IMG/VR virus record: IMGVR_UViG_3300026484_000007
Location: 208,603-272,602 of that record
Length of the DNA stretch: 64,000 nucleotides
Direction: 5' to 3' (one strand)
Shown: positions 411 through 43,599 of the stretch, piece by piece
Numbering within the stretch: the first letter of the stretch is position 1
Layout: each line of letters begins with the position of its first letter
The notes under the pieces: generated by a model
Database searches by the model: none
The model's input: the letters and a program-made list of their open reading frames with translations, nothing else
What the model was told of the DNA's origin: nothing
Program-made: the position numbers and the translations under genes

Positions 411-847
411 AAGAATTAGAATTGAACGCTTCGAACAAGCCAAATTTTTTATCGGATGAAGAAATTAATTCTCTTTTGGATGTAGTTTTCGATAAAAATT
501 TTATTGAAAACACTCAAAGAAAATATTTTACTAGCGATAATAAAGATGATATAATTAAAGGCCATCAATTAATACTAGAACATATTAGTGTTAGAATTGA
601 TAAGCTTTTACTTGGATTTAAAAATATAAAAATAGAAGGATCTTTAGCAGATCCAATAATAAAAATTCTTGGAGAAAATCAATATGATGATCACGTGAAT
701 TTATTTAAAATTATTCAATCGACAAAAAATCTAAATAACGATATTATCGAAGCTATTGCTCAAATGGATTATATTGAAAATAAAATAAGAAAAAAAGTGG
801 AAGAAAAGGAACTCGAAGATGAAAATACAGAAGAATGTCATTTTTGA
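407..847 (+). CDS. hypothetical protein (FliM-N-like LSDEEINSLL motif)
   Basis: 146-aa ORF with AAGGA RBS, overlapping both neighbours. Confidence 0.7.
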   Translation: MKELELNASNKPNFLSDEEINSLLDVVFDKNFIENTQRKYFTSDNKDDIIKGHQLILEHISVRIDKLLLGFKNIKIEGSLADPIIKILGENQYDDHVNLFKIIQSTKNLNNDIIEAIAQMDYIENKIRKKVEEKELEDENTEECHF

Positions 848-1307
848 TAATAATACTAAATTACTAATTTATGCAGATGGTAGTTGTCTCGGAAATCCTG
901 GAAAAGGAGGATGGGCAGCTCTTTTAATTTTTTTAAAAAATGGAGCGAAGAAAGCTGAAAAAATGATATCGGGTTGTTCTAAATCTAGCACTAATAATAA
1001 AATGGAATTACAAGCAGTTATCGAAGCTTTAAAAACTATAAAATTAAATACTATTTCGTATCCAATAGAGATTCATGTTGATTCTCAATATGTTCAAAAA
1101 GGGCTAACTGACTGGAGAGAATCTTGGGAGTATCGAAATTTTAGAGGAGTAAAGAATCCTGAGCAATGGAAAGAATTGATTGATTTAATAAATAAAATTG
1201 AACATAAAAAAATTAAAATATCTATCAATTATGTAAAAGCTCATAACGGGCATCCTGAAAACGAAAGAGTCGATGACGAAGCAAGAAAAAAAGCCGAGAG
1301 ATGCTAA
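819..1307 (+). CDS. rnhA: ribonuclease HI
   Basis: IYADGSCLGNPGKGGWAA, TNNKMELQAVIEAL, DSQYV, VKAHNGHPENERVD: all RNase HI catalytic motifs present. Confidence 0.97.
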   Translation: MKIQKNVIFDNNTKLLIYADGSCLGNPGKGGWAALLIFLKNGAKKAEKMISGCSKSSTNNKMELQAVIEALKTIKLNTISYPIEIHVDSQYVQKGLTDWRESWEYRNFRGVKNPEQWKELIDLINKIEHKKIKISINYVKAHNGHPENERVDDEARKKAERC

Positions 1308-1341: not shown

Positions 1342-1830
1342 ATGAAAAACATGAAAAACATGAAAAACATTTTTACATCCATAAAAGATCTTTTTAAAAA
1401 AGATTACGAAAAAATTATTGAAGAATTAAAAGATGAGCATAAATATTTACTCATTCTTTATCACGAAATTATTCATATTTGTACGGTAGAAAAAGATATT
1501 GAAAGATTAAATAATATGATCGATAATTTTTTAAATATCTTAAAAGAACATTTAGAAAAAGAAAATAAAGAGATCTATGAATTTTTTGACAATACAATTA
1601 CTGATGAATTGATAAAAGAACATATCGAAAAAATTAGAAAAGACATCAAAATTATTGATAAAAAATTGAAAATTATTTTAAAAAAGCATAGAAAAATCAA
1701 AGAGGAAACCCTTGATTCATTCCTAAGAGATTTTTCTTATTTAATACAAATGATAATCAAAAGAGTTGAGTTAGAAGAGAATATTATATATTCTTATTTT
1801 CTTCGTAAAAAATCTTCAAAAGCAATTTAA
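1342..1830 (+). CDS. hemerythrin/HHE cation-binding domain protein
   Basis: LKDEHKYL ... EHLEKENKEIY ... RVELEENIIY four-helix hemerythrin-like pattern. Confidence 0.7.
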   Translation: MKNMKNMKNIFTSIKDLFKKDYEKIIEELKDEHKYLLILYHEIIHICTVEKDIERLNNMIDNFLNILKEHLEKENKEIYEFFDNTITDELIKEHIEKIRKDIKIIDKKLKIILKKHRKIKEETLDSFLRDFSYLIQMIIKRVELEENIIYSYFLRKKSSKAI

Positions 1831-1927
1831 AGAAATAAAAATTCATTATCAAATTATAAGCATATGATAATCATACGAAAATCATTCAAATGTGATAAAA
1901 TTACAATAAAATCAAAGGAGACTAGAA

Positions 1928-2575
1928 ATGAAAAAAATTACATTAACTGAAGCATTATCTGAATTAAAATTATACGATAAAAAAATTACTAAAGAAATAT
2001 CAGAATTAAGTAGATCTAAAAGCACAGTCGATTATGTTATAGGTAAAAATAAATTAACTGAAATCAATAAAATGACTGAAGAAGAGTTAAAAGAATATGC
2101 TCAAAGCGCTGTAGATAAATTATTAAATTTAATTAAAAACAGAGGTATTCTTAAAGCAGCAATTGCTAAAGCAAACGCAATTACAACATTAAACGTTAAT
2201 GGAAAAGAATATACTATCGTAGAAGCTATTGAAAGAAAAAATAATATTTATAAAGAAAAAGAAATTTTAAATATTCTTGCAGAAAATTATAACAATGTTG
2301 CTTATAAAGTTTCAAGAATCAATGAAAATGCGAGAGATGAAGTAAATAGATTATTAGAAGCTAAATTATCTAGCGATAGTAAAAATCAATCGTCAGATGA
2401 AATTGAAAAACTATCTCAAGTTCTTTTAGAAGCTAAAGAAGCTAAAATTCTCGATCCATATAAAATCGGAGATTTAATAGTAAAAATGCAAGAAGAAATT
2501 GAAGAGTTCGAAACTAACATCGACGTAGCATTATCAATCGTAAATGCTAAAACAGAAATCGAAGTAGATCTTTAA
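1928..2575 (+). CDS. conserved coiled-coil protein (DIP1984-like family)
   Basis: N-terminal TLTEALSELKLYDKKI, central AIAKANAITTLNVNGKEYTIVEAIERK, C-terminal IDVALSIVNAKTEIEV; strong AAGGAG RBS. Confidence 0.6.
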   Translation: MKKITLTEALSELKLYDKKITKEISELSRSKSTVDYVIGKNKLTEINKMTEEELKEYAQSAVDKLLNLIKNRGILKAAIAKANAITTLNVNGKEYTIVEAIERKNNIYKEKEILNILAENYNNVAYKVSRINENARDEVNRLLEAKLSSDSKNQSSDEIEKLSQVLLEAKEAKILDPYKIGDLIVKMQEEIEEFETNIDVALSIVNAKTEIEVDL

Positions 2576-2600
2576 AAGATCTACTTTTTTTTGTCATTAG
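2562..2600 (+). terminator. intrinsic terminator built on a GATC-N7-GATC palindrome, with TTTTTTGTCATTAG tail
   Basis: AAGTAGATC-TTTAAAA-GATCTACTT hairpin followed by a T run. Confidence 0.7.
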
Positions 2601-2622: not shown

Positions 2623-4923
2623 ATGAACGATATTTACGTAATTAAAAGAGATGGAAGAAAAGAAAAATTTCAATTAAGCAAAATAAGAAAACAGATTGAA
2701 TTTGCATGCGCGCCTACTTCAGTAAGTCCTCTTGAAATCGAAAGTCTTTTAAAGATTGATCTTCATAAACCAGATTTAAAAACTTCAGACATTCAAGAAA
2801 TCATTATTGGATCAATTGTAAAAAATATTAATATTGATAATAAAGAGTGGGATTTAATTGCTGGTAGAGCAGCGATGTTTGATCTTTATAGAAACGTTTA
2901 TAAAGTTACAGGTTTTGATCCAAAAGATTGGAGAGAACATATTAAATGGCTTACTGAAAATAATAGATACAGAACTGATATTTTATCTAAATTAGAAAAA
3001 ATGGAGAAAGAAAGAAAATTAGAATTCTTAGATGATCTTTTAGAGAACTTTGTAACTGGAAATTATGATTTTCAAATGGTGTACTCGCAAGTACAAGTTA
3101 TTAAATCTAAGTATCTTTTAAAAAGCAAAAGAAAAATTATTGAATATCCAGTGTTGACTGATATAGTTAATAGTATTATTTTATGCGATGGAACTTATGA
3201 AGATTTTAAAATTCTTTTTGAAATGATTCATAATCAATATATTTCATTAGCGACTCCATTTAAAGCTAATCTTAGAATTCCAAATGGAAGTGTTACATCT
3301 TGTTTTATTGGAGAAAATATCGATAGTCTTGCGGGAATTGCTAAAGCTTGGAAAGATATGGCTAAGATATCTCAAGAAGGTGGAGGAATCGGTTGGGACT
3401 TTTCAAAAATTAGACCAGGAGATTCTTATACTGATAACGTTCCTAAATCAAATACTATCAATAAATGGCTTAAGATAGTTAATGATATTATGGTTGCTGT
3501 TAATCAAAGAGGAATTAGACCAGGAGCTTTAACTCCAGCAATACCTTGGTGGCATTTAGATGTTTTTGATTTTATCGATATGAAATCAGAATTAAATGGA
3601 GATCTTAGAGAAAAATGTTTTGACCTTTTCCCTCAAGTAACTGTAGATAATTATTTTATTGATGCGGTACTTAACGACGAAGAAGTTTATTTATTCGACC
3701 AAAAAGAATATAAAGATTTAACTTGCATCGATATTACTGAGTTAGTCGATGAAAAATTATATGAAACTCATAAACATGTTGAAAAATTAATCAATGAAAA
3801 TAAACTTACTCATTATAAAAAGATTAAAGCTAGAGATCTTTGGAAAAAAATCTTATGGGTATGGGTTGAGATAGGTGATTTTTATATCGCTCATAAAGAC
3901 AATATTAATAAAGCAAATTACTTAAAAAATGATCCTCAAGGAGGGATTACAAAGAATGTTAATCTATGTTGTGAAAGTTATAGTCTTACAAAAGCACCTA
4001 CTCAATGGGCTTCAAAATCAATTAATGATGGTGATAGAGAAATAACAATTGAAACGGATGGTAGATATCATGCTTGTAATCTTTGTAGTATCAATCTTAC
4101 AAATCTTGTAGATAAATCGGAAGAATTTATTAAATTAGTTTCTAAATACGCAGTAATTATTCTTGATAGAGGAATTGATTTAAGTACTTTCCCAGTTCTT
4201 GAAGCTGAATTAAATTCAAAAGAATTAAGAAACATAGGTATCGGATTTGTAGGTATGGCTGATTATATGGCTTATAATAATAAAATGTTTGACACTGAAG
4301 ATGGTCAAAGATTTGCGGAAGCTTTAATCGAAAGATTCTCTTGGTACGTTCATAATACAAGCGTAGAATTAGCTAAAGAAAAAGGATCTTATCCATTATT
4401 CAAACCAGAAAATTATTATAAAATTCTTGGGCATAAACCAGAAGAATTAGAAAATTTTAGTAAAGCAAATGGAAATAATTTCCCTTGGAGACAATTACAA
4501 CAAGATATTTTTGAACATGGAATTAGAAATTTTTATTTATTAAGTCCAGCACCAAACACATCAACTGCGATCTTAAATGGATCAACAGCGAGTTTCTTAC
4601 CAGTATATAATAAAGAAATGTATCAAACAATGAGCAATCAATCAGTTCCTATTATTCCTAAATTTATTAAAGAAAAATTCTGGTTGTATAAAACTAAATT
4701 CGATTATATTCCAAAAGATATCATCAATTATACTAGAAGACTTCAAAGATGGATTGACGCAGGAATTTCATTAGAAATTAATATTAATCCAGCTCTTACG
4801 AATATCAAAGAAATTTCAGATGCTATTCTAGATGGTTTTAAATCTGGAGAGCTTAAAGCAATATATTATTCATTGACAATTGATGGTAAAAAACAAGAAG
4901 GTTGTGTATCATGTGCGAATTAG
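2623..4923 (+). CDS. nrdA: ribonucleoside-diphosphate reductase class Ia alpha subunit
   Basis: ATP-cone start VIKRDGRKEKF, TSCF, GGGIG, NLCCE, CNLCSINL, APNTST, YY pair, C-terminal CVSC. Confidence 0.97.
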   Translation: MNDIYVIKRDGRKEKFQLSKIRKQIEFACAPTSVSPLEIESLLKIDLHKPDLKTSDIQEIIIGSIVKNINIDNKEWDLIAGRAAMFDLYRNVYKVTGFDPKDWREHIKWLTENNRYRTDILSKLEKMEKERKLEFLDDLLENFVTGNYDFQMVYSQVQVIKSKYLLKSKRKIIEYPVLTDIVNSIILCDGTYEDFKILFEMIHNQYISLATPFKANLRIPNGSVTSCFIGENIDSLAGIAKAWKDMAKISQEGGGIGWDFSKIRPGDSYTDNVPKSNTINKWLKIVNDIMVAVNQRGIRPGALTPAIPWWHLDVFDFIDMKSELNGDLREKCFDLFPQVTVDNYFIDAVLNDEEVYLFDQKEYKDLTCIDITELVDEKLYETHKHVEKLINENKLTHYKKIKARDLWKKILWVWVEIGDFYIAHKDNINKANYLKNDPQGGITKNVNLCCESYSLTKAPTQWASKSINDGDREITIETDGRYHACNLCSINLTNLVDKSEEFIKLVSKYAVIILDRGIDLSTFPVLEAELNSKELRNIGIGFVGMADYMAYNNKMFDTEDGQRFAEALIERFSWYVHNTSVELAKEKGSYPLFKPENYYKILGHKPEELENFSKANGNNFPWRQLQQDIFEHGIRNFYLLSPAPNTSTAILNGSTASFLPVYNKEMYQTMSNQSVPIIPKFIKEKFWLYKTKFDYIPKDIINYTRRLQRWIDAGISLEININPALTNIKEISDAILDGFKSGELKAIYYSLTIDGKKQEGCVSCAN

Positions 4924-5216
4924 ACCAAAATGCTAAAAATGAAATCTTAAAAGAAATAAGACAATTAAGGCAAAAATTTGAAGAGGATCTTAGAAATAAA
5001 AGATTCTCTTCGGATATACCAGAGAGATCTTTTGCAGATCAGTTTGAGCAAATTGTCCCACCATTAACATTTTTAATAGTGGTTTTATCTATATTGATTT
5101 TATTCATTGGTGATGTATACAATAAACATCAATTAAATAAATTAATTATCGAAAAAAATTGTAGTCAATTTTTAAATAAGATGCATGAAATAAGAGAAAT
5201 GAAGGAGAAAAAATGA
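4902..5216 (+). CDS. small membrane protein
   Basis: Single hydrophobic segment LTFLIVVLSILILFIG; lies between nrdA and nrdB. Confidence 0.6.
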   Translation: MCIMCELDQNAKNEILKEIRQLRQKFEEDLRNKRFSSDIPERSFADQFEQIVPPLTFLIVVLSILILFIGDVYNKHQLNKLIIEKNCSQFLNKMHEIREMKEKK

Positions 5217-6283
5217 GCCAAATATCAAATCAAGTAAATCATAATTGTAAAGTTAAAAAATTATTTAATCCAGATGTTCAGGATGAACACAAATTATACG
5301 GAGGTTGTACGACAAATACATTAGATCTTGCTAACGTAAAATATCCAGTGTTCGTTGATTGGGTGGATAAACAATACGCAAATAACTGGTTACCTCAAAA
5401 AGTTGATATGACTGGGGATTATAGTCAATACTGGAATGATTTAACAGATGATGAAAGAGTTGCGTTTGATAATATTTTATCTTTCTTAATATTCTTAGAT
5501 AGTATTCAAACGAACAATCTTCCTAATATTGCAGATTATATTACATTACCTGAGGTTGTATATGCATTAGCAAGACAAACATATGACGAAGCAATACATA
5601 GTCGTTCATATGGATTAATATTAAATTTTAATATTAAAGATAAAGCTAAAATAGAAGAAATTACTTATCTTTGGAGAAAAAATAAAATTCTTTTAGAAAG
5701 AAATAAAAAAATTGCAGAGATCTATCAAGACGCAAAAGATAATCATTCTGATCTTAATTTTATCAAAGGTCTTATAGGGAATTTTATGTTAGAAGGAATT
5801 TATTTTTATAATGGATTTCAGTTCTTTCATAATCTTGCATCAAGAGGTCTTATGATTGGAACAGATACTCAAATCAGATATATCCAAAGAGATGAATTAG
5901 GACATTTAAAGCTTTTCGCTGATATTATTAAAATATCGCAAGAAGAAAATCCAGAAATTTGGACAGACGAAGTTAAAGAAATCGTTTACGATATGTTTAG
6001 AGATGCTGTAGATCTTGAAATTAAATTTAGTCAAGATGTTATTGGAGATAAAATTCTTGGAATGAGTTCACAAGCAATCGAAGATTACGCTTATTGGCTT
6101 GGGAATAAAAGACTTAAAGAAATTAAATTAAAACCAATTTTTCCAGAAAGAAAAAATCCTTATTCTCATTTAGAAAAAATTGCTTCTGTCGAAGATGAAA
6201 GTTCAAATAGAACTAATAACTTCGAAAGCACATCAATTACTTATAAATCTCCAGAAATTCTTGATGGATGGGATCAAATTTAA
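5213..6283 (+). CDS. nrdB: ribonucleoside-diphosphate reductase class Ia beta subunit
   Basis: NNWLPQKV, FLDSIQ, EAIHSRSY, LEGIYFYNGF, IQRDELGH, NFESTSITY. Confidence 0.97.
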   Translation: MSQISNQVNHNCKVKKLFNPDVQDEHKLYGGCTTNTLDLANVKYPVFVDWVDKQYANNWLPQKVDMTGDYSQYWNDLTDDERVAFDNILSFLIFLDSIQTNNLPNIADYITLPEVVYALARQTYDEAIHSRSYGLILNFNIKDKAKIEEITYLWRKNKILLERNKKIAEIYQDAKDNHSDLNFIKGLIGNFMLEGIYFYNGFQFFHNLASRGLMIGTDTQIRYIQRDELGHLKLFADIIKISQEENPEIWTDEVKEIVYDMFRDAVDLEIKFSQDVIGDKILGMSSQAIEDYAYWLGNKRLKEIKLKPIFPERKNPYSHLEKIASVEDESSNRTNNFESTSITYKSPEILDGWDQI

Positions 6284-6305
6284 AACCGATTTAAAAAGGA
6301 ATCAA

Positions 6306-6491
6306 ATGTTACTTAAAGAATGTAATGGTTGCAAATATCTAGCTCGATTGATCGGTATAGGTCAAGGAGTTAGATGTACAAATCCAGAAAATCAAATAAC
6401 TGGAATGGATGGATCAAAAGCGATAGTTATATCTCAGATAGAGAATTGTAATTATTATAAGCAACATAAAAAAGATAAGAAAGAATCTTAA
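6306..6491 (+). CDS. small Cys4 (zinc-binding-like) protein
   Basis: AAAGGA RBS before the ATG at 6306; CNGC...C...C pattern. The track's start at 6180 overlaps nrdB and is unlikely. Confidence 0.6.
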   Translation: MLLKECNGCKYLARLIGIGQGVRCTNPENQITGMDGSKAIVISQIENCNYYKQHKKDKKES

Positions 6492-6512: not shown

Positions 6513-6540
6513 TTGAAATATTTTTTTTGAAATTTAAGAT
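6513..6540 (+). promoter_or_regulatory. sigma70-like promoter for the large ncRNA
   Basis: TTGAAA-N16-TAAGAT ending about 9 nt before the first strand of the closing helix. Confidence 0.45.
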
Positions 6541-6672
6541 TTTCTTTAACTTTCTTTATCAGGCGATAAAAATCGAATAATCCCGCCTGACTGGAGCGAA
6601 ATACCAGTCACAAAATTATTTTACATGGGTTAAAATAAGGAGATCGCACTGAAGATGCGCTTTTATAATTAC

Positions 6673-6744
6673 ACCAAAAACGAAGGTTCGATTCCTTCCT
6701 TTCCCAACATAATAGGGAAAGTAGCCAAGAGGTAAGGCATTGGT
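6673..6744 (+). tRNA. circularly permuted tRNA-like domain (3' half precedes 5' half, no closed anticodon loop)
   Basis: ACCAA-aaac-GAAGG-TTCGATT-CCTTC-CTTTCCC-A, 8-nt linker, then GGGAAAG-TA-GCC-AAGAGGTAA-GGC-A-TTGGT. All four stems pair perfectly. Confidence 0.8.
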
Positions 6745-6775
6745 TCCAAAATATAAATATATAACAATCGAACGA

Positions 6776-6859
6776 AAAGTTCAAAGTAAAAAATTTAAAA
6801 TTTAATGCTTAAATACTAACTACTAAAAATTAACCTTCAAAATTTAAAATAAAAAGCTT
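6776..6859 (+). repeat. 12 consecutive degenerate 7-nt units, each starting AA
   Basis: aaagttc aaagtaa aaaattt aaaattt aatgctt aaatact aactact aaaaatt aaccttc aaaattt aaaataa aaagctt. Confidence 0.7.
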
Positions 6860-6938
6860 TTTAAAATCTTGGAGGAAGTTTTAAGTGGCGAGGATTAGCC
6901 CGATTTTTGATCCAAGCTGCTTGATAGAGAAAGACTTC

Positions 6939-6976
6939 AAAACCCTCGCATAGTGCGAGGGTTTTTTTGTCGTTAG
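6939..6976 (+). terminator. intrinsic terminator with GTCGTTAG tail
   Basis: AAAACCCTCGCA-TAG-TGCGAGGGTTTTTTT. Confidence 0.9.
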
Positions 6977-7015
6977 AAAAAATTAGATAAAATTAGAAAA
7001 ATAAAAAAATTTTGT

Positions 7016-7110
7016 AAATAAAATCTATGGGGAGCAATGCTCCCCATAGGGGGACTTTGTCCCCCTTGGAGGAGTGGAGACTTTTCGTCTCCACTCCTCT
7101 CTTTCTGCTA
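7016..7110 (-). ncRNA. GC-rich triple-hairpin cassette 1 (putative small RNA; strand uncertain)
   Basis: Hairpins CTATGGGGAGC/GCTCCCCATAG, GGGGGAC/GTCCCCC and GAGGAGTGGAGAC/GTCTCCACTCCTC. Leftward promoter-like motif at 7116-7145. On the - strand the last hairpin is followed by ATTTTATTT. Confidence 0.5.
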
Positions 7111-7115
7111 TTTAT

Positions 7116-7145
7116 ATATCAATTAAAACTAAAGCAGTTCTAAAA
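7116..7145 (-). promoter_or_regulatory. bipartite motif TTTTAGAACT-N14-(A/T)GATAT (putative phage promoter)
   Basis: Same motif and spacing at 7334-7363, 7966-7995 and 8695-8724, the last directly upstream of the only - strand gene. Confidence 0.55.
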
Positions 7146-7166
7146 AATCTCCGTAAATAAAATTAC

Positions 7167-7328
7167 AAATAAAATCTATGGGGAGCATTGCTCCCCATAG
7201 GGGGACTTTGTCCCCCACTCACTGGGGTGGTTGCCCACATTGGCAACGGGAGCAATCCCGCTCATTTGAGCGGGGCCCGACCACCCCGGAGGACTCACCT
7301 CCTTTCTTGGAGTCCTCCTTTTTTGCTA
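7167..7328 (-). ncRNA. GC-rich multi-hairpin cassette 2 with SD/anti-SD loop (putative small RNA; strand uncertain)
   Basis: Shares the two terminal hairpins with cassettes 1 and 3. Extra multibranch domain at 7224-7287. Hairpin 7288-7318 has loop ACCTCCTTTCTTG. Confidence 0.55.
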
Positions 7329-7333
7329 ATTAA

Positions 7334-7363
7334 ATATCTGATAAAACTAAAGCAGTTCTAAAA
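7334..7363 (-). promoter_or_regulatory. TTTTAGAACT-N14-AGATAT motif
   Basis: Copy of the bipartite motif, followed on the - strand by TAGCAAAA. Confidence 0.55.
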
Positions 7364-7442
7364 AATCTTTATAAATAAATTTAAAAAATCTTTTCTAAAA
7401 CAATATATAAATTATCAATTAAAATATATAAGGAGATTAATT

Positions 7443-7826: not shown

Positions 7827-7865
7827 AAAAAATTAGAAAAAATTAGAAAAAATAAAAAAATTTGC

Positions 7866-7960
7866 AAATAAAATCTATGGGGAGCAATGCTCCCCATAGG
7901 GGGACTTTGTCCCCCTTGGAGGAGTGGGGAATTTTCATCTCCACTCCTCTCTTTCTGCTA
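7866..7960 (-). ncRNA. GC-rich triple-hairpin cassette 3 (near copy of cassette 1)
   Basis: Part of a ~185-bp direct repeat (6961-7145 vs 7811-7995). Confidence 0.5.
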
Positions 7961-7965
7961 TTTAT

Positions 7966-7995
7966 ATATCTAATAAAACTAAAGTAGTTCTAAAA
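7966..7995 (-). promoter_or_regulatory. TTTTAGAACT-N14-AGATAT motif
   Basis: Copy of the bipartite motif. Confidence 0.55.
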
Positions 7996-8042
7996 ATAAT
8001 TAAAAATTAATGCGAAAAAAAGAGACAGAAGCGTCAGTAGGC

Positions 8043-8663
8043 TTAAGCCTCCGATTGATGCTTTTTAAGCAATTTATCGAAGGCTTTCAGATACCTACTA
8101 ATCTTGACAATATACACAATTGTCGCCCCTGAAATTATCCCGAATAGGAGTATAACTCCATTGTCGGGCAACTTCAGGTATGAATAGCCCATTAATAATA
8201 GGGCCACAACCAATTGCACTCTCGAGCGCGCTTTATTCACGTCACTCGAAAACGTCTCCGCCTCTTCTGAATTCAGCAAGACGTTCGTCAAAACTGAATT
8301 CATGTTCGCCTGAACGGCGAACAACAATACATACAGCGGAAAGATCAATACGACGATCTTTGCCGCTAATACTCTATCTATCTCCGGATGGAGATAGAAT
8401 AGGTACACTAGAATGCAGAAATACGCTACATCTAGTGTGCTTAATAACACGAAGCTCGCAAAGTAGCTAATTTTGTGTGTTAGCCACTTATTGAACTCCA
8501 TCATTGTAGCGCTCATTAGACTAATGAACGCGATAAACCCAACCGAGAACTCACCATAAAGGTGAGACTCAAATGGTTGAATTATTTGGAAAGCTAAGCT
8601 TCCCAGAATAACTATCTTTATTCTTAATGTTAAGAATAAAGACTTCAATACTTCCATCTTCAT
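8043..8663 (-). CDS. polytopic membrane protein (about 5-6 TM)
   Basis: AAGGAG RBS on the - strand, several hydrophobic helices, visibly more GC-rich than neighbours. Confidence 0.75.
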   Translation of the reverse strand: MKMEVLKSLFLTLRIKIVILGSLAFQIIQPFESHLYGEFSVGFIAFISLMSATMMEFNKWLTHKISYFASFVLLSTLDVAYFCILVYLFYLHPEIDRVLAAKIVVLIFPLYVLLFAVQANMNSVLTNVLLNSEEAETFSSDVNKARSRVQLVVALLLMGYSYLKLPDNGVILLFGIISGATIVYIVKISRYLKAFDKLLKKHQSEA

Positions 8664-41892: not shown

Positions 41893-43599
41893 ATGTCAAA
41901 ATTCGAAAACTTTTTTGGAGCGCTTCCTATTTTAAAACATATGAAATCTGAAGATTTTAAAGCTTTAAAATTACTAACAGAAAATGAAAAATATTCAGAA
42001 GATCTTCAAAAACTTGAAAATATTAATTCTAAATTAATCAATATTATCAATAACCCTTATTTAAAATATCCTAATTATTTAAAAGAACAAGATGAATCTT
42101 TTATAGATACATTTTATAATAATAAAGAAGGTAAAGAAAAATTAAAAAAAACATTAAGTGATAGATATCGATCTTCAATAGATACATTAGAAGAATATTC
42201 TAAAAATTTAGATAAAATAGATTATACTTTTGAAATTCTTTTTGAAGCTCAAGAAGAAGTAAATTCCGAAAGCCAATCAGATCCTTCTCAATCTCAAAAT
42301 GGCGAAAATAGAAAATTATCTGACGAACAGATTCAGCAGATAGCTCAAGGTATCCAAGATGGATCAATATCCGAAGAAGAGATTCAATCTGCGATACAGC
42401 AAGGTCAAATTGGAGAAGGAGATGTTGAATTAATTCAACAAGCGATGGGTCAGCAATCTGAAGAATCTGCTCAACAAAAAGAGGAAATTTCTAAACAACA
42501 AGTTGATCAAATTACTGATTCTTTTATTCGATTAAATTTATTTGATAAAATTAATGATCTTGAAGAAAAATTTGAAAGTTTTATCAATACTTCAAATGAT
42601 GCTGAAATGGTCGAAAAAATTAAACAATTAAAAAATTATTTAGATATAATTCTTTCTTTAGTGTATAATATGGATGTAAATTTGCTTTACCAATTATACG
42701 CTACTATCGAATTAAAAGCAATTACATTATTTAAAGAAAAAATGGGAATAAAAACTATAGATGATGATGACGAATACTTAATTAATCTTCAACGTCAAGC
42801 ATATGCTCAAGAATTAAAAAGTAAATTTCCAAAAGAAATTCTTATGGAAAAATTAGCTTCTGGCGAATTAGAAGGTACTACGATTCTTGAAGATTTAGTA
42901 AAATATCAAATATATTCAGAAGAAGAAATTCAACAGATGATGCAAGAGGCACAGCAGCAACAGGAACAACAACAGGCGCAAGAACAAGGGCAACCAGAAC
43001 AAGGATCCCCAGCAGATCAACAACCTGGAACACCTGATCCAGCAGCAGCTCAAGCGCAACCTCAGCCAGATCAACCTGCTCAGCAAGCTAATCCTCAACA
43101 AGTTGATCCAGCGCAAGCGGGACAAGCTCAAGCTCAACCTCAACCAACACAAGGATCTCCAGCAGATCAACAAGCTCAAGCGGGACAAGCTCAAGCACAA
43201 CCTCAAAATAATCAAGAACAATTAGCTCAGCAGATGATGCAATCTGCTGAAGAATTAAAACAAGCTGCTCAAGTAATGTTAAATAATTCAGAACAAGATG
43301 AAATTACGCAAATCGCTAACGCAATCGTATCTGGGCAAATGTCAGCTGATGAATTAATTCAACAATTTATGAATAATCAGATTTCGAAAGAAGATTTTAA
43401 AAAGATTATTTCAAAAATCGATGAAATTAAAAAAGCTGGTGGAGAAGGATCTTCTGGAGATCAAGCTCAAAGCCAAGCTCAAAGTCAAGGCGAACAGCAA
43501 ATTACAGATGATGAATCTAAAGATTTAAAAGCAAAAGAATCGAAAGAACCTAAAAAGAAAAAGAATGTTGACGTTAGTAGCGACGCAGTTGATGTATAA
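41893..43599 (+). CDS. Gln-rich acidic protein, possible scaffold/head protein
   Basis: 568 aa downstream of portal; QAGQAQAQPQ repeats; LxE motifs. Confidence 0.5.
   Translation: MSKFENFFGALPILKHMKSEDFKALKLLTENEKYSEDLQKLENINSKLINIINNPYLKYPNYLKEQDESFIDTFYNNKEGKEKLKKTLSDRYRSSIDTLEEYSKNLDKIDYTFEILFEAQEEVNSESQSDPSQSQNGENRKLSDEQIQQIAQGIQDGSISEEEIQSAIQQGQIGEGDVELIQQAMGQQSEESAQQKEEISKQQVDQITDSFIRLNLFDKINDLEEKFESFINTSNDAEMVEKIKQLKNYLDIILSLVYNMDVNLLYQLYATIELKAITLFKEKMGIKTIDDDDEYLINLQRQAYAQELKSKFPKEILMEKLASGELEGTTILEDLVKYQIYSEEEIQQMMQEAQQQQEQQQAQEQGQPEQGSPADQQPGTPDPAAAQAQPQPDQPAQQANPQQVDPAQAGQAQAQPQPTQGSPADQQAQAGQAQAQPQNNQEQLAQQMMQSAEELKQAAQVMLNNSEQDEITQIANAIVSGQMSADELIQQFMNNQISKEDFKKIISKIDEIKKAGGEGSSGDQAQSQAQSQGEQQITDDESKDLKAKESKEPKKKKNVDVSSDAVDV

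Follow-up and report, generated by a model that had tools for sequence, protein, structure and literature searches.

A conserved phage protein gene and its partner structured RNA in a jumbo phage from a vent metagenome

Organisation of the locus

The stretch analysed here, called the window, is 64,000 nucleotides long and is the last 64 kb of a 272.6-kb IMG/VR jumbo-phage record that is 97% complete. The only public runs that contain it are DNA runs from a hydrothermal vent metagenome. Near one end of the window, a gene for a 215-aa protein lies after an RNase H gene and a hemerythrin-like gene, and is followed by nrdA, nrdB and then a structured RNA of 384 nt, with a 15-bp closing helix (P1), a pseudoknot, a heptad array and a conserved 3′ hairpin module (Table 1). 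The gene and the RNA are each single-copy in the genome. The sequence-only reading had noticed a coiled-coil protein 4 kb upstream of a large non-coding RNA, separated from it by nrdAB, and this observation is confirmed.

Table 1. Features of the gene and RNA region, in window positions.
Position	Strand	Feature	Remarks
819-1307		RNase H gene	
1342-1830		hemerythrin-like gene	
1885-1912	+	sigma-70-like promoter match, TTCAAA-16-TAAAAT, upstream of the protein gene	weak: promoter-like matches in this AT-rich region are not above chance (39 found, 31.6 expected)
1928-2575	+	gene for the 215-aa protein, predicted helical bundle, phrog_1491 / T5.085 family	distant relative of DIP1984/DUF6847
2561-2587	+	intrinsic-terminator-like hairpin with a T run, overlapping the end of the gene	12-bp stem; terminator-like sites number 7 against 1.5 expected
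2623-4923		nrdA	
5213-6283		nrdB	
6513-6540	+	promoter-like site, TTGAAA-16-TAAGAT	ends 10 nt before the RNA 5′ end; weak on its own
6550-6933	+	whole structured RNA, 384 nt	begins 3975 nt after the gene
6550-6564	+	P1 closing helix, 5′ strand, CTTTCTTTATCAGGC	15 bp including 2 G-U pairs; followed by the A-rich junction GAUAAAAAUCG, where relatives have GAAAAC
6582-6638	+	pseudoknot: S1, CCC 6582-6584 with GGG 6627-6629; S2, UUAUUUU 6616-6622 with AAAAUAA 6632-6638	read by eye; extra hairpin inside (6588-6594 with 6604-6610); conserved GGGUUAAAA at 6627-6635
6673-6744	+	lineage-specific insert, circularly permuted tRNA-like cloverleaf	entry stem ACCAA/UUGGU; T hairpin GAAGG-UUCGAUU-CCUUC; 7-bp acceptor-like hairpin (6699-6705 with 6715-6721) closed by a 9-nt loop; D-like hairpin
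6773-6856	+	single-stranded array of 12 x 7 nt	CGAAAAG TTCAAAG TAAAAAA TTTAAAA TTTAATG CTTAAAT ACTAACT ACTAAAA ATTAACC TTCAAAA TTTAAAA TAAAAAG
6863-6919	+	conserved 3′ module, AAAATCTTGGA...TCCAAGCTG	AAAAUC, helix H1 (6868-6873 with 6911-6916), inner hairpin H3 (6887-6889 with 6898-6900), then GCUG; AAAAUC-CUUGGA...UCCAAG-CUG
6919-6933	+	P1 closing helix, 3′ strand, GCTTGATAGAGAAAG	
6939-6965	+	intrinsic terminator, 6 nt after the RNA 3′ end	12-bp stem, 6 G-C pairs, T run

The protein belongs to a large phage family labelled tail fiber

Pfam and NCBIfam searches gave nothing significant for the protein, but it matched the PHROG 1491 profile end to end (E 1.9e-48, residues 1-214 against profile positions 2-210 of 211). 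The family includes T5 gene T5.085. The residues K14, L68, K76, N83, D199, L202 and N206 are invariant in 47 sequences including the window's. A tblastn search found relatives in 737 phage records, among them T5-like phages, Pseudomonas KIL-like phages, Vibrio phages, Bacillus Bastille-like phages, Lactococcus 949-like phages, Clostridioides phiCD211 and several jumbo phages. An exhaustive profile search found 3752 cluster representatives at 50% identity, of which the best 150 are all about 200-220 aa long and single-domain.

AlphaFold2 modelled the protein (pLDDT 94) as an elongated antiparallel helical bundle, in which the N- and C-terminal strands and a hairpin form a small 4-stranded sheet at one pole. 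The term coiled coil was therefore roughly right, but the coil is intramolecular. The only solved structure with the same fold is 3KDQ, of the DIP1984 or "septicolysin" family (Pfam DUF6847, PF20935), with Z 11.2 and 152 of 152 residues aligned, against 7.7 for the next hit, a Foldseek probability of 1.00 and a profile E of 0.011. That protein is about 60 residues shorter and has no known function and no known RNA binding. At the sequence level the window protein does not reach the Pfam threshold for DUF6847, as it gave no hit at E <= 0.1, while relatives scored 11-25 bits, below the gathering threshold of 27 bits. Searches of PDB sequences, BFVD, AFDB and the ESM Atlas did not yield a functional name either.

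The conserved residues are K14, K18/19, R72, K76, N83, T86, A100, E102, R103, K104, F194, D199, L202, S203, N206 and T209. Judging from the topology of the model, which makes this an inference, they all lie within a few turns of the strands, that is, at one pole. The family as a whole is mildly acidic, with a median pI of 5.6, and the window protein has a net charge of −5.

PHROGs and RefSeq carry the label "tail fiber protein" for this family, and we found no support for it. The gene sits among early and nucleotide-metabolism genes, next to RNase H, the hemerythrin-like gene and nrdAB in the window and in the early tRNA region in T5, the model is a compact helical bundle and not a fibrous fold, and no tail-fiber family matched in Pfam.

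The RNA in the window

The whole RNA folds with z = −5.65. Its 3′ module scored 57.4 bits (E 1e-8) against a covariance model built from the window's own and 11 related 3′ modules, so that this score is partly circular, and the independent evidence comes from the hits in loci outside that set. The array consists of exactly 12 heptads with consensus AAAAUUU, 42 of 56 positions being identical in the best 8 units, and its autocorrelation peaks at lags 7 and 14 (0.51 and 0.50). Small hairpins complete the fold. None of this is a chance pattern.

Because of a T-loop, GGUUCGAUUCC, and weak Rfam hits, we first considered a two-piece (permuted) tmRNA or another tRNA-like translation RNA, for which a pseudoknot and an A-rich stretch also speak. 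Rfam gave weak hits to beta_tmRNA (22.5 bits) and tmRNA_permuted (18.7 bits) at 6680-6749, far below the gathering thresholds of 84 and 47 bits, and ARAGORN found nothing. These weak hits are explained by the insert, for which the permuted cloverleaf is the minimum-free-energy fold. Its acceptor-like stem is closed by a loop and has G3-C70 instead of G3-U70, and the A-rich track has stop codons (UAA) in all frames. Moreover, the insert is absent from nearly all other members, including the closest relatives (loci L234 and L235). The tmRNA reading is thus refuted as an explanation for the family. Compared with the tmRNA-SmpB system, which shares a pseudoknot followed by an A-rich single-stranded stretch and closure by pairing of the ends, there is no chargeable acceptor end, no reading frame and no SmpB.

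No Rfam 15 family accounts for the RNA. The whole window and 12 related loci gave only tRNAs at gathering scores, the RNAs of T5 and of a further related locus (L056) had no hit at E <= 1, and in the window the only hits fell on the tRNA-like insert or the terminator.

The gene and the RNA are associated in both directions

The sequence-only reading had stated, without verification, that genes of this family are often followed by a long non-coding tract with AAAG-periodic repeats and an AAAATC(C)TTG...CAAG(G)CTG end, and had proposed co-occurrence and adjacency as a test. In the first two annotated phages examined, phiCD211 and Pseudomonas KIL1, the homolog is followed by a gene-free tract of 450-640 nt with the same features. 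We then collected 80 IMG/VR loci by protein similarity alone. A sequence profile of the 3′ module hit 59 of them, always on the gene's strand and 160-380 nt after the stop codon. A covariance model of the module hit 73 of the 80 at the same place, with only two stray weak hits in 1 Mb, and the remaining loci have the RNA in diverged form when read by eye. P1 starts 10-40 nt after the stop codon, and RNA lengths are 290-440 nt. Among 80 bacterial or MAG loci, also chosen by the protein alone, 75 have the module at the same offset and on the same strand. These are prophages in Bacillus, Lysinibacillus, Brevibacillus and Psychrobacillus, plus a Cloacimonadota MAG at 56% identity and a Persephonella MAG at 48% identity, the closest relatives.

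For the reverse test, IMG/VR was scanned for AAATCCTTG-N30-60-CAAGGCTG. Of the loci returned, 27 were positive by the covariance model, and 24 of these carry the gene directly upstream on the same strand. Two more had too little upstream DNA in the locus, but their records hold the gene, and the last record, only 49% complete, lacks it. None of the 53 model-negative chance matches has the gene. Clustering all ORFs of the loci showed no other conserved neighbour, as the commonest families, which include HU, an SbcD-like phosphoesterase, PhoH and ClpP, reach at most 21 of 81 loci. The conserved unit is therefore exactly one gene plus one RNA. The modules that characterise the cassette (P1, GAAAAC junction, pseudoknot, heptad array and AAAUCC...GGCUG module) are all present on the gene's strand in the window, which differs from the norm in distance. 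We conclude that the unverified statement on this family was correct.

The helices co-vary and are strand-specific

To ask whether the conserved tract acts as RNA, pairing was examined across the loci. P1 was found in nearly all loci, with 60 different sequences and a median of 13 bp, against 7 bp when the 3′ strand of another locus was substituted. It averages 12.2 bp when G-U pairs are allowed, but 6.9 bp with Watson-Crick pairs only and 7.6 bp under the pairing rules of the opposite strand, so that the structure belongs to the transcript of the gene's strand. In the 3′ module 96.5% of cells are paired, with 155 double-sided changes. None of 500 shuffles was as high and slid controls gave 33-51% paired, although this alignment was fitted to the model. 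A MAFFT alignment of the 5′ module was too poor for column-wise pair counts, and the pseudoknot was therefore scored per sequence. A pseudoknot of fixed geometry and free sequence was found in 38 of 54 RNAs, against 12 of 162 shuffles. This strict geometry misses T5, locus L064 and the window's true pseudoknot, which was read by eye. A long-range pairing between the GAAAAC junction and the U-run of the 3′ module is possible, but both sides are nearly invariant and offer no covariation.

These results bear on the possibility that the repeats act as DNA, that is, as an iteron, centromere or origin-like array bound by the protein on double-stranded DNA. Short direct repeats next to a small helical protein gene do recall partition or replication loci, and HU, ParA-like and replication genes are sometimes nearby. 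However, the flanking helices depend on G-U pairs, are strand-specific and show compensatory changes, a discrete RNA with exactly these borders exists in T5 (see below), and a 7-bp period does not keep binding sites on one face of B-DNA. We consider this reading very unlikely.

The 7-nt period is family-wide

Spacings between AAAG motifs peak at 7, 14 and 21 nt (19%, 12% and 5% of spacings, against about 1% each in shuffles). Motif-free autocorrelation is 0.446, 0.413 and 0.381 at lags 7, 14 and 21, against 0.31 in shuffles (0.308 at lag 7), and lag 7 is the best lag in 56 of 63 RNAs. The usual unit is AAAR-N-U-Y. Some clades use other units at the same period: CAGGACU in the GC-rich locus L035, and GCAAGGA or CAACAA in a group of jumbo-phage contigs (L040, L042, L046 and L055).

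The RNA could be a protein-independent decoy or sponge, its heptad track soaking up a host molecule such as an A-rich-RNA-binding protein, a ribonuclease or toxin that cuts A-rich RNA, or the anticodon loop of tRNA-Lys(UUU), since UUAAAG is complementary to U33-A38 of that tRNA. The adjacent protein would then act in the same pathway, or in making the RNA, without staying bound to it. In favour of this reading, the usual heptad AAAG-UU-Y is A-rich and single-stranded, the cassette is embedded in or next to tRNA gene clusters in many phages, the RNA is abundant in T5 and the protein is not basic overall. Against it, a universally conserved host target such as a tRNA loop would not tolerate the change of heptad sequence between clades, and no reason is given for the near-absolute one-to-one linkage with this single gene across very different hosts. 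We regard it as unlikely, though it remains the strongest of the alternatives.

A discrete RNA accumulates in T5-infected cells

T5 has the gene as T5.085 (YP_006913.1), with the RNA directly after it, whereas record AY692264 annotates an ORF on the opposite strand. The tract is at least 90% identical in about 440 T5-like records, where it is annotated as nothing or as "promoter". We examined public RIP-seq and RNA-seq runs of T5-infected cells, in the form of assembled contigs. Two runs contain a separate 366-nt contig (positions 7965-8330 of our T5 locus, L103), with a word depth of 1017 and 831, against 107-193 and 328-477 in the flanks, and the species is found at 3-10 times the flanking depth. 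In NC_005859 it lies at about 43,135-43,500 on the minus strand. Illumina adapter is joined directly at position 8330, the 5′ end of the species. Contigs in four other runs start at 7961-7979. These ends are 2 nt after the stop codon and at the foot of an extended P1 of 17-20 bp, and the species folds with a 20-bp P1 and z = −6.2. This is good but indirect evidence for a processed, stable RNA, as it rests on assembled contigs of RIP-seq libraries and not on raw reads or a Northern blot.

Adjacency and co-transcription would also be expected if the RNA only regulated or stabilised this gene, or if both acted separately in one pathway. The RNA might be a 3′ element setting the stability or translation of the mRNA, or an antidote to a harmful protein, as in a type III toxin-antitoxin pair (ToxIN, CptIN, TenpIN), where a protein gene carried by phages or plasmids is tightly linked to tandem RNA repeats. 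The RNA is indeed a repeat-bearing RNA immediately 3′ of a small protein gene, co-transcribed with it in nearly all loci and in excess over the mRNA in T5 (3-10 times). However, in the window it is 4 kb away, behind two terminators and with its own promoter-like site, so a cis role is dispensable. Type III repeats are 34-45-nt pseudoknot units lying upstream of the gene of an endoribonuclease toxin that cuts them, while here the units are 7 nt long, inside a larger scaffold downstream of the gene, and the predicted fold is a helical bundle, not an endoribonuclease. The cassette is also common in strictly lytic phages such as T5. This explanation appears unlikely.

A putative ribonucleoprotein

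We propose that the gene and the RNA are the two components of one conserved phage cassette. In almost every other genome the RNA would be co-transcribed with the gene it follows, then released as a stable RNA of about 300-400 nt. In the window, since the closest relatives have the adjacent arrangement, nrdA-nrdB was inserted between the two, and the RNA, having kept its promoter-like site and terminator, would work in trans. The most likely mechanism is that the two form a ribonucleoprotein. P1, the pseudoknot and the 3′ hairpin module would fold into a closed scaffold protecting the ends and presenting an unstructured track of 10-14 heptads, on which copies of the protein would dock through their conserved, Lys/Arg-rich, sheet-capped pole, one per 7-nt register, giving a particle of defined size.

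Our analysis establishes the linkage of gene and RNA, the existence of a strand-specific structured transcript, the 7-nt period, expression in T5 and the separability of the two parts in the window. In contrast, binding of the RNA by the protein, the use of the basic pole, the role of the heptads as docking sites, any oligomeric state and the biological function are inferred only. The sequence-only interpretation, an oligomeric protein binding the 12 x 7-nt array to form an undescribed ribonucleoprotein, is thus partly supported: the partnership is strongly supported by comparative genomics, whereas the mechanism remains a reasonable inference. That the heptad sequence changes between clades at a constant period fits a co-evolving dedicated partner better than a universal host ligand, but the acidic bulk of the protein argues against over-confidence. 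We estimate the probability of direct ribonucleoprotein formation at about 0.5, while a functional link of some kind is very probable.

The cassette sits in early, tRNA-rich and nucleotide-metabolism regions, which points to an accessory role early in infection, such as translation or tRNA biology, or host takeover. More tentatively, it may represent a widespread and previously unrecognised class of phage ribonucleoprotein, from T5 to jumbo phages and prophages of Bacillota, in which the 7-nt-periodic track acts as a ruler for assembly of a particle of fixed length, acting early on translation or tRNA biology, or against a host defence. If the pair forms a particle, this adds a new RNA class and a new RNA-binding fold, which would be present in a classic model phage and in thousands of environmental phages, and the track would be a rare natural example of a sequence ruler for protein assembly on RNA. 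The cassette gives a function lead for a large family now mislabelled, and indirectly for the DIP1984/"septicolysin" fold, and it explains a conserved "intergenic" tract in about 440 T5-like genomes.

Comparison with known systems

The protein family was already known under its tail fiber label, but the RNA appears undescribed. No record examined annotates it, and literature searches on T5.085, phrog_1491, DUF6847, DIP1984, septicolysin and T5 ncRNA or RIP-seq, which did not cover subscription-only papers, gave nothing on this gene or RNA. The nearest analogies each share single features only. Ro60 (Rsr) with Y RNA or YrlA, including phage-encoded copies, also pairs a non-coding RNA with the adjacent gene of its dedicated protein, the RNA ends pair in a long closing stem, and the RNA can carry a tRNA-like module, as in the window. 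However, the protein here is a predicted helical bundle and not a HEAT-repeat ring, no Rfam Y-RNA family matched, Y RNAs have no 7-nt repeat track, and the consistently adjacent gene is phrog_1491. TRAP with the trp leader and HutP with the hut mRNA, in which periodic single-stranded RNA is wrapped on a ring oligomer, are the best precedent for one protomer per repeat: HutP reads UAG triplets at a 7-nt period, and TRAP reads 11 triplets at a 5-6-nt period. Those RNAs are cis-acting operon leaders and not free stable RNAs with a scaffold, the proteins have beta-rich folds, and no homology was found. GOLLD and ROOL are large, ornate, phage-borne RNAs that often sit beside tRNA genes, but no Rfam match was obtained, the present RNA is smaller, and it has an invariably linked protein gene, which GOLLD and ROOL lack. 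In many loci of the present family, a tRNA gene starts 3-100 nt after the RNA or lies just before the gene, and in one locus (L031) a real tRNA-Ser lies inside the RNA.

Elements within and around the RNA

Inspection of the RNA and its surroundings, in the window and in loci carrying the same cassette, revealed additional features, whose positions are collected in the table below. Within the RNA itself, a circularly permuted tRNA-like cloverleaf is embedded. It is composed of an anticodon-stem-like entry helix ACCAA/UUGGU, a canonical T hairpin with loop UUCGAUU, a 7-bp acceptor-like hairpin closed by a 9-nt loop (G3-C70), and a D-like hairpin. This is the minimum-free-energy fold, and the element is absent from the closest relatives. 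In locus L031, which also carries the cassette, a bona fide tRNA-Ser(UGA) gene was found inside the RNA, between the pseudoknot and the heptad array. Processing of this tRNA would cut that RNA into two pieces held together by P1.

We also found that some clades use different heptad units, while the 7-nt period is the same: CAGGACU in a GC-rich phage (locus L035), and GCAAGGA or CAACAA in jumbo-phage contigs (L040, L042, L046 and L055). This is a possible handle for studying protein-RNA co-evolution.

Just after the RNA, in an otherwise AT-rich region, three copies of a GC-rich element were detected, 79-94% identical. Each has three strong hairpins, CUAUGGGGAGCAAUGCUCCCCAUAG, GGGGGACUUUGUCCCCC and GGAGGAGUGGAGAC...GUCUCCACUCCUC, and the middle copy is longer than the others. 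They could be a family of small-RNA paralogs, or else a repeated regulatory or terminator element. On the other side of the RNA, a 103-aa ORF overlaps the end of nrdB and ends just before the promoter-like site of the RNA. It has a CxxC-containing segment (ECNGCKYLARL...VRCTNPENQ), and no family match was found for it.

Positions of the additional features in the window and in related loci
Sequence	Position	Feature
Window	819-1307	RNase H gene
Window	6180-6491	103-aa ORF
Window	6673-6744	Circularly permuted tRNA-like cloverleaf
Window	7003-7146	GC-rich element
Window	7154-7387	GC-rich element (middle copy)
Window	7853-8019	GC-rich element
L031	6703-6777	tRNA-Ser(UGA) gene inside the RNA
L035	6800-6860	CAGGACU heptad units
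L040, L042, L046, L055	about 150-240 nt after the gene	GCAAGGA or CAACAA heptad units
L079	1866-1954	tRNA with anticodon CUA
L087 (T5 record AY692264)	1-468	RNase H gene
L087 (T5 record AY692264)	2719-3516	T5p083

Gene neighbourhood and annotation in T5 and other phages

In the T5 record AY692264, the ORF annotated at this locus, T5p083, is on the strand opposite to the conserved gene. In NC_005859, the conserved gene is correctly placed as T5.085, but it is named 'tail fiber protein', a label that is propagated through PHROGs and RefSeq without support. An RNase H gene lies 0.6-2.3 kb upstream of the cassette both in this jumbo phage and in T5, which could be either residual synteny or coincidence. 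Finally, in the phage contig L079, the cassette is directly followed by a cluster of 14 tRNAs, in which ARAGORN calls a tRNA with anticodon CUA, an amber reader labelled tRNA-Pyl.
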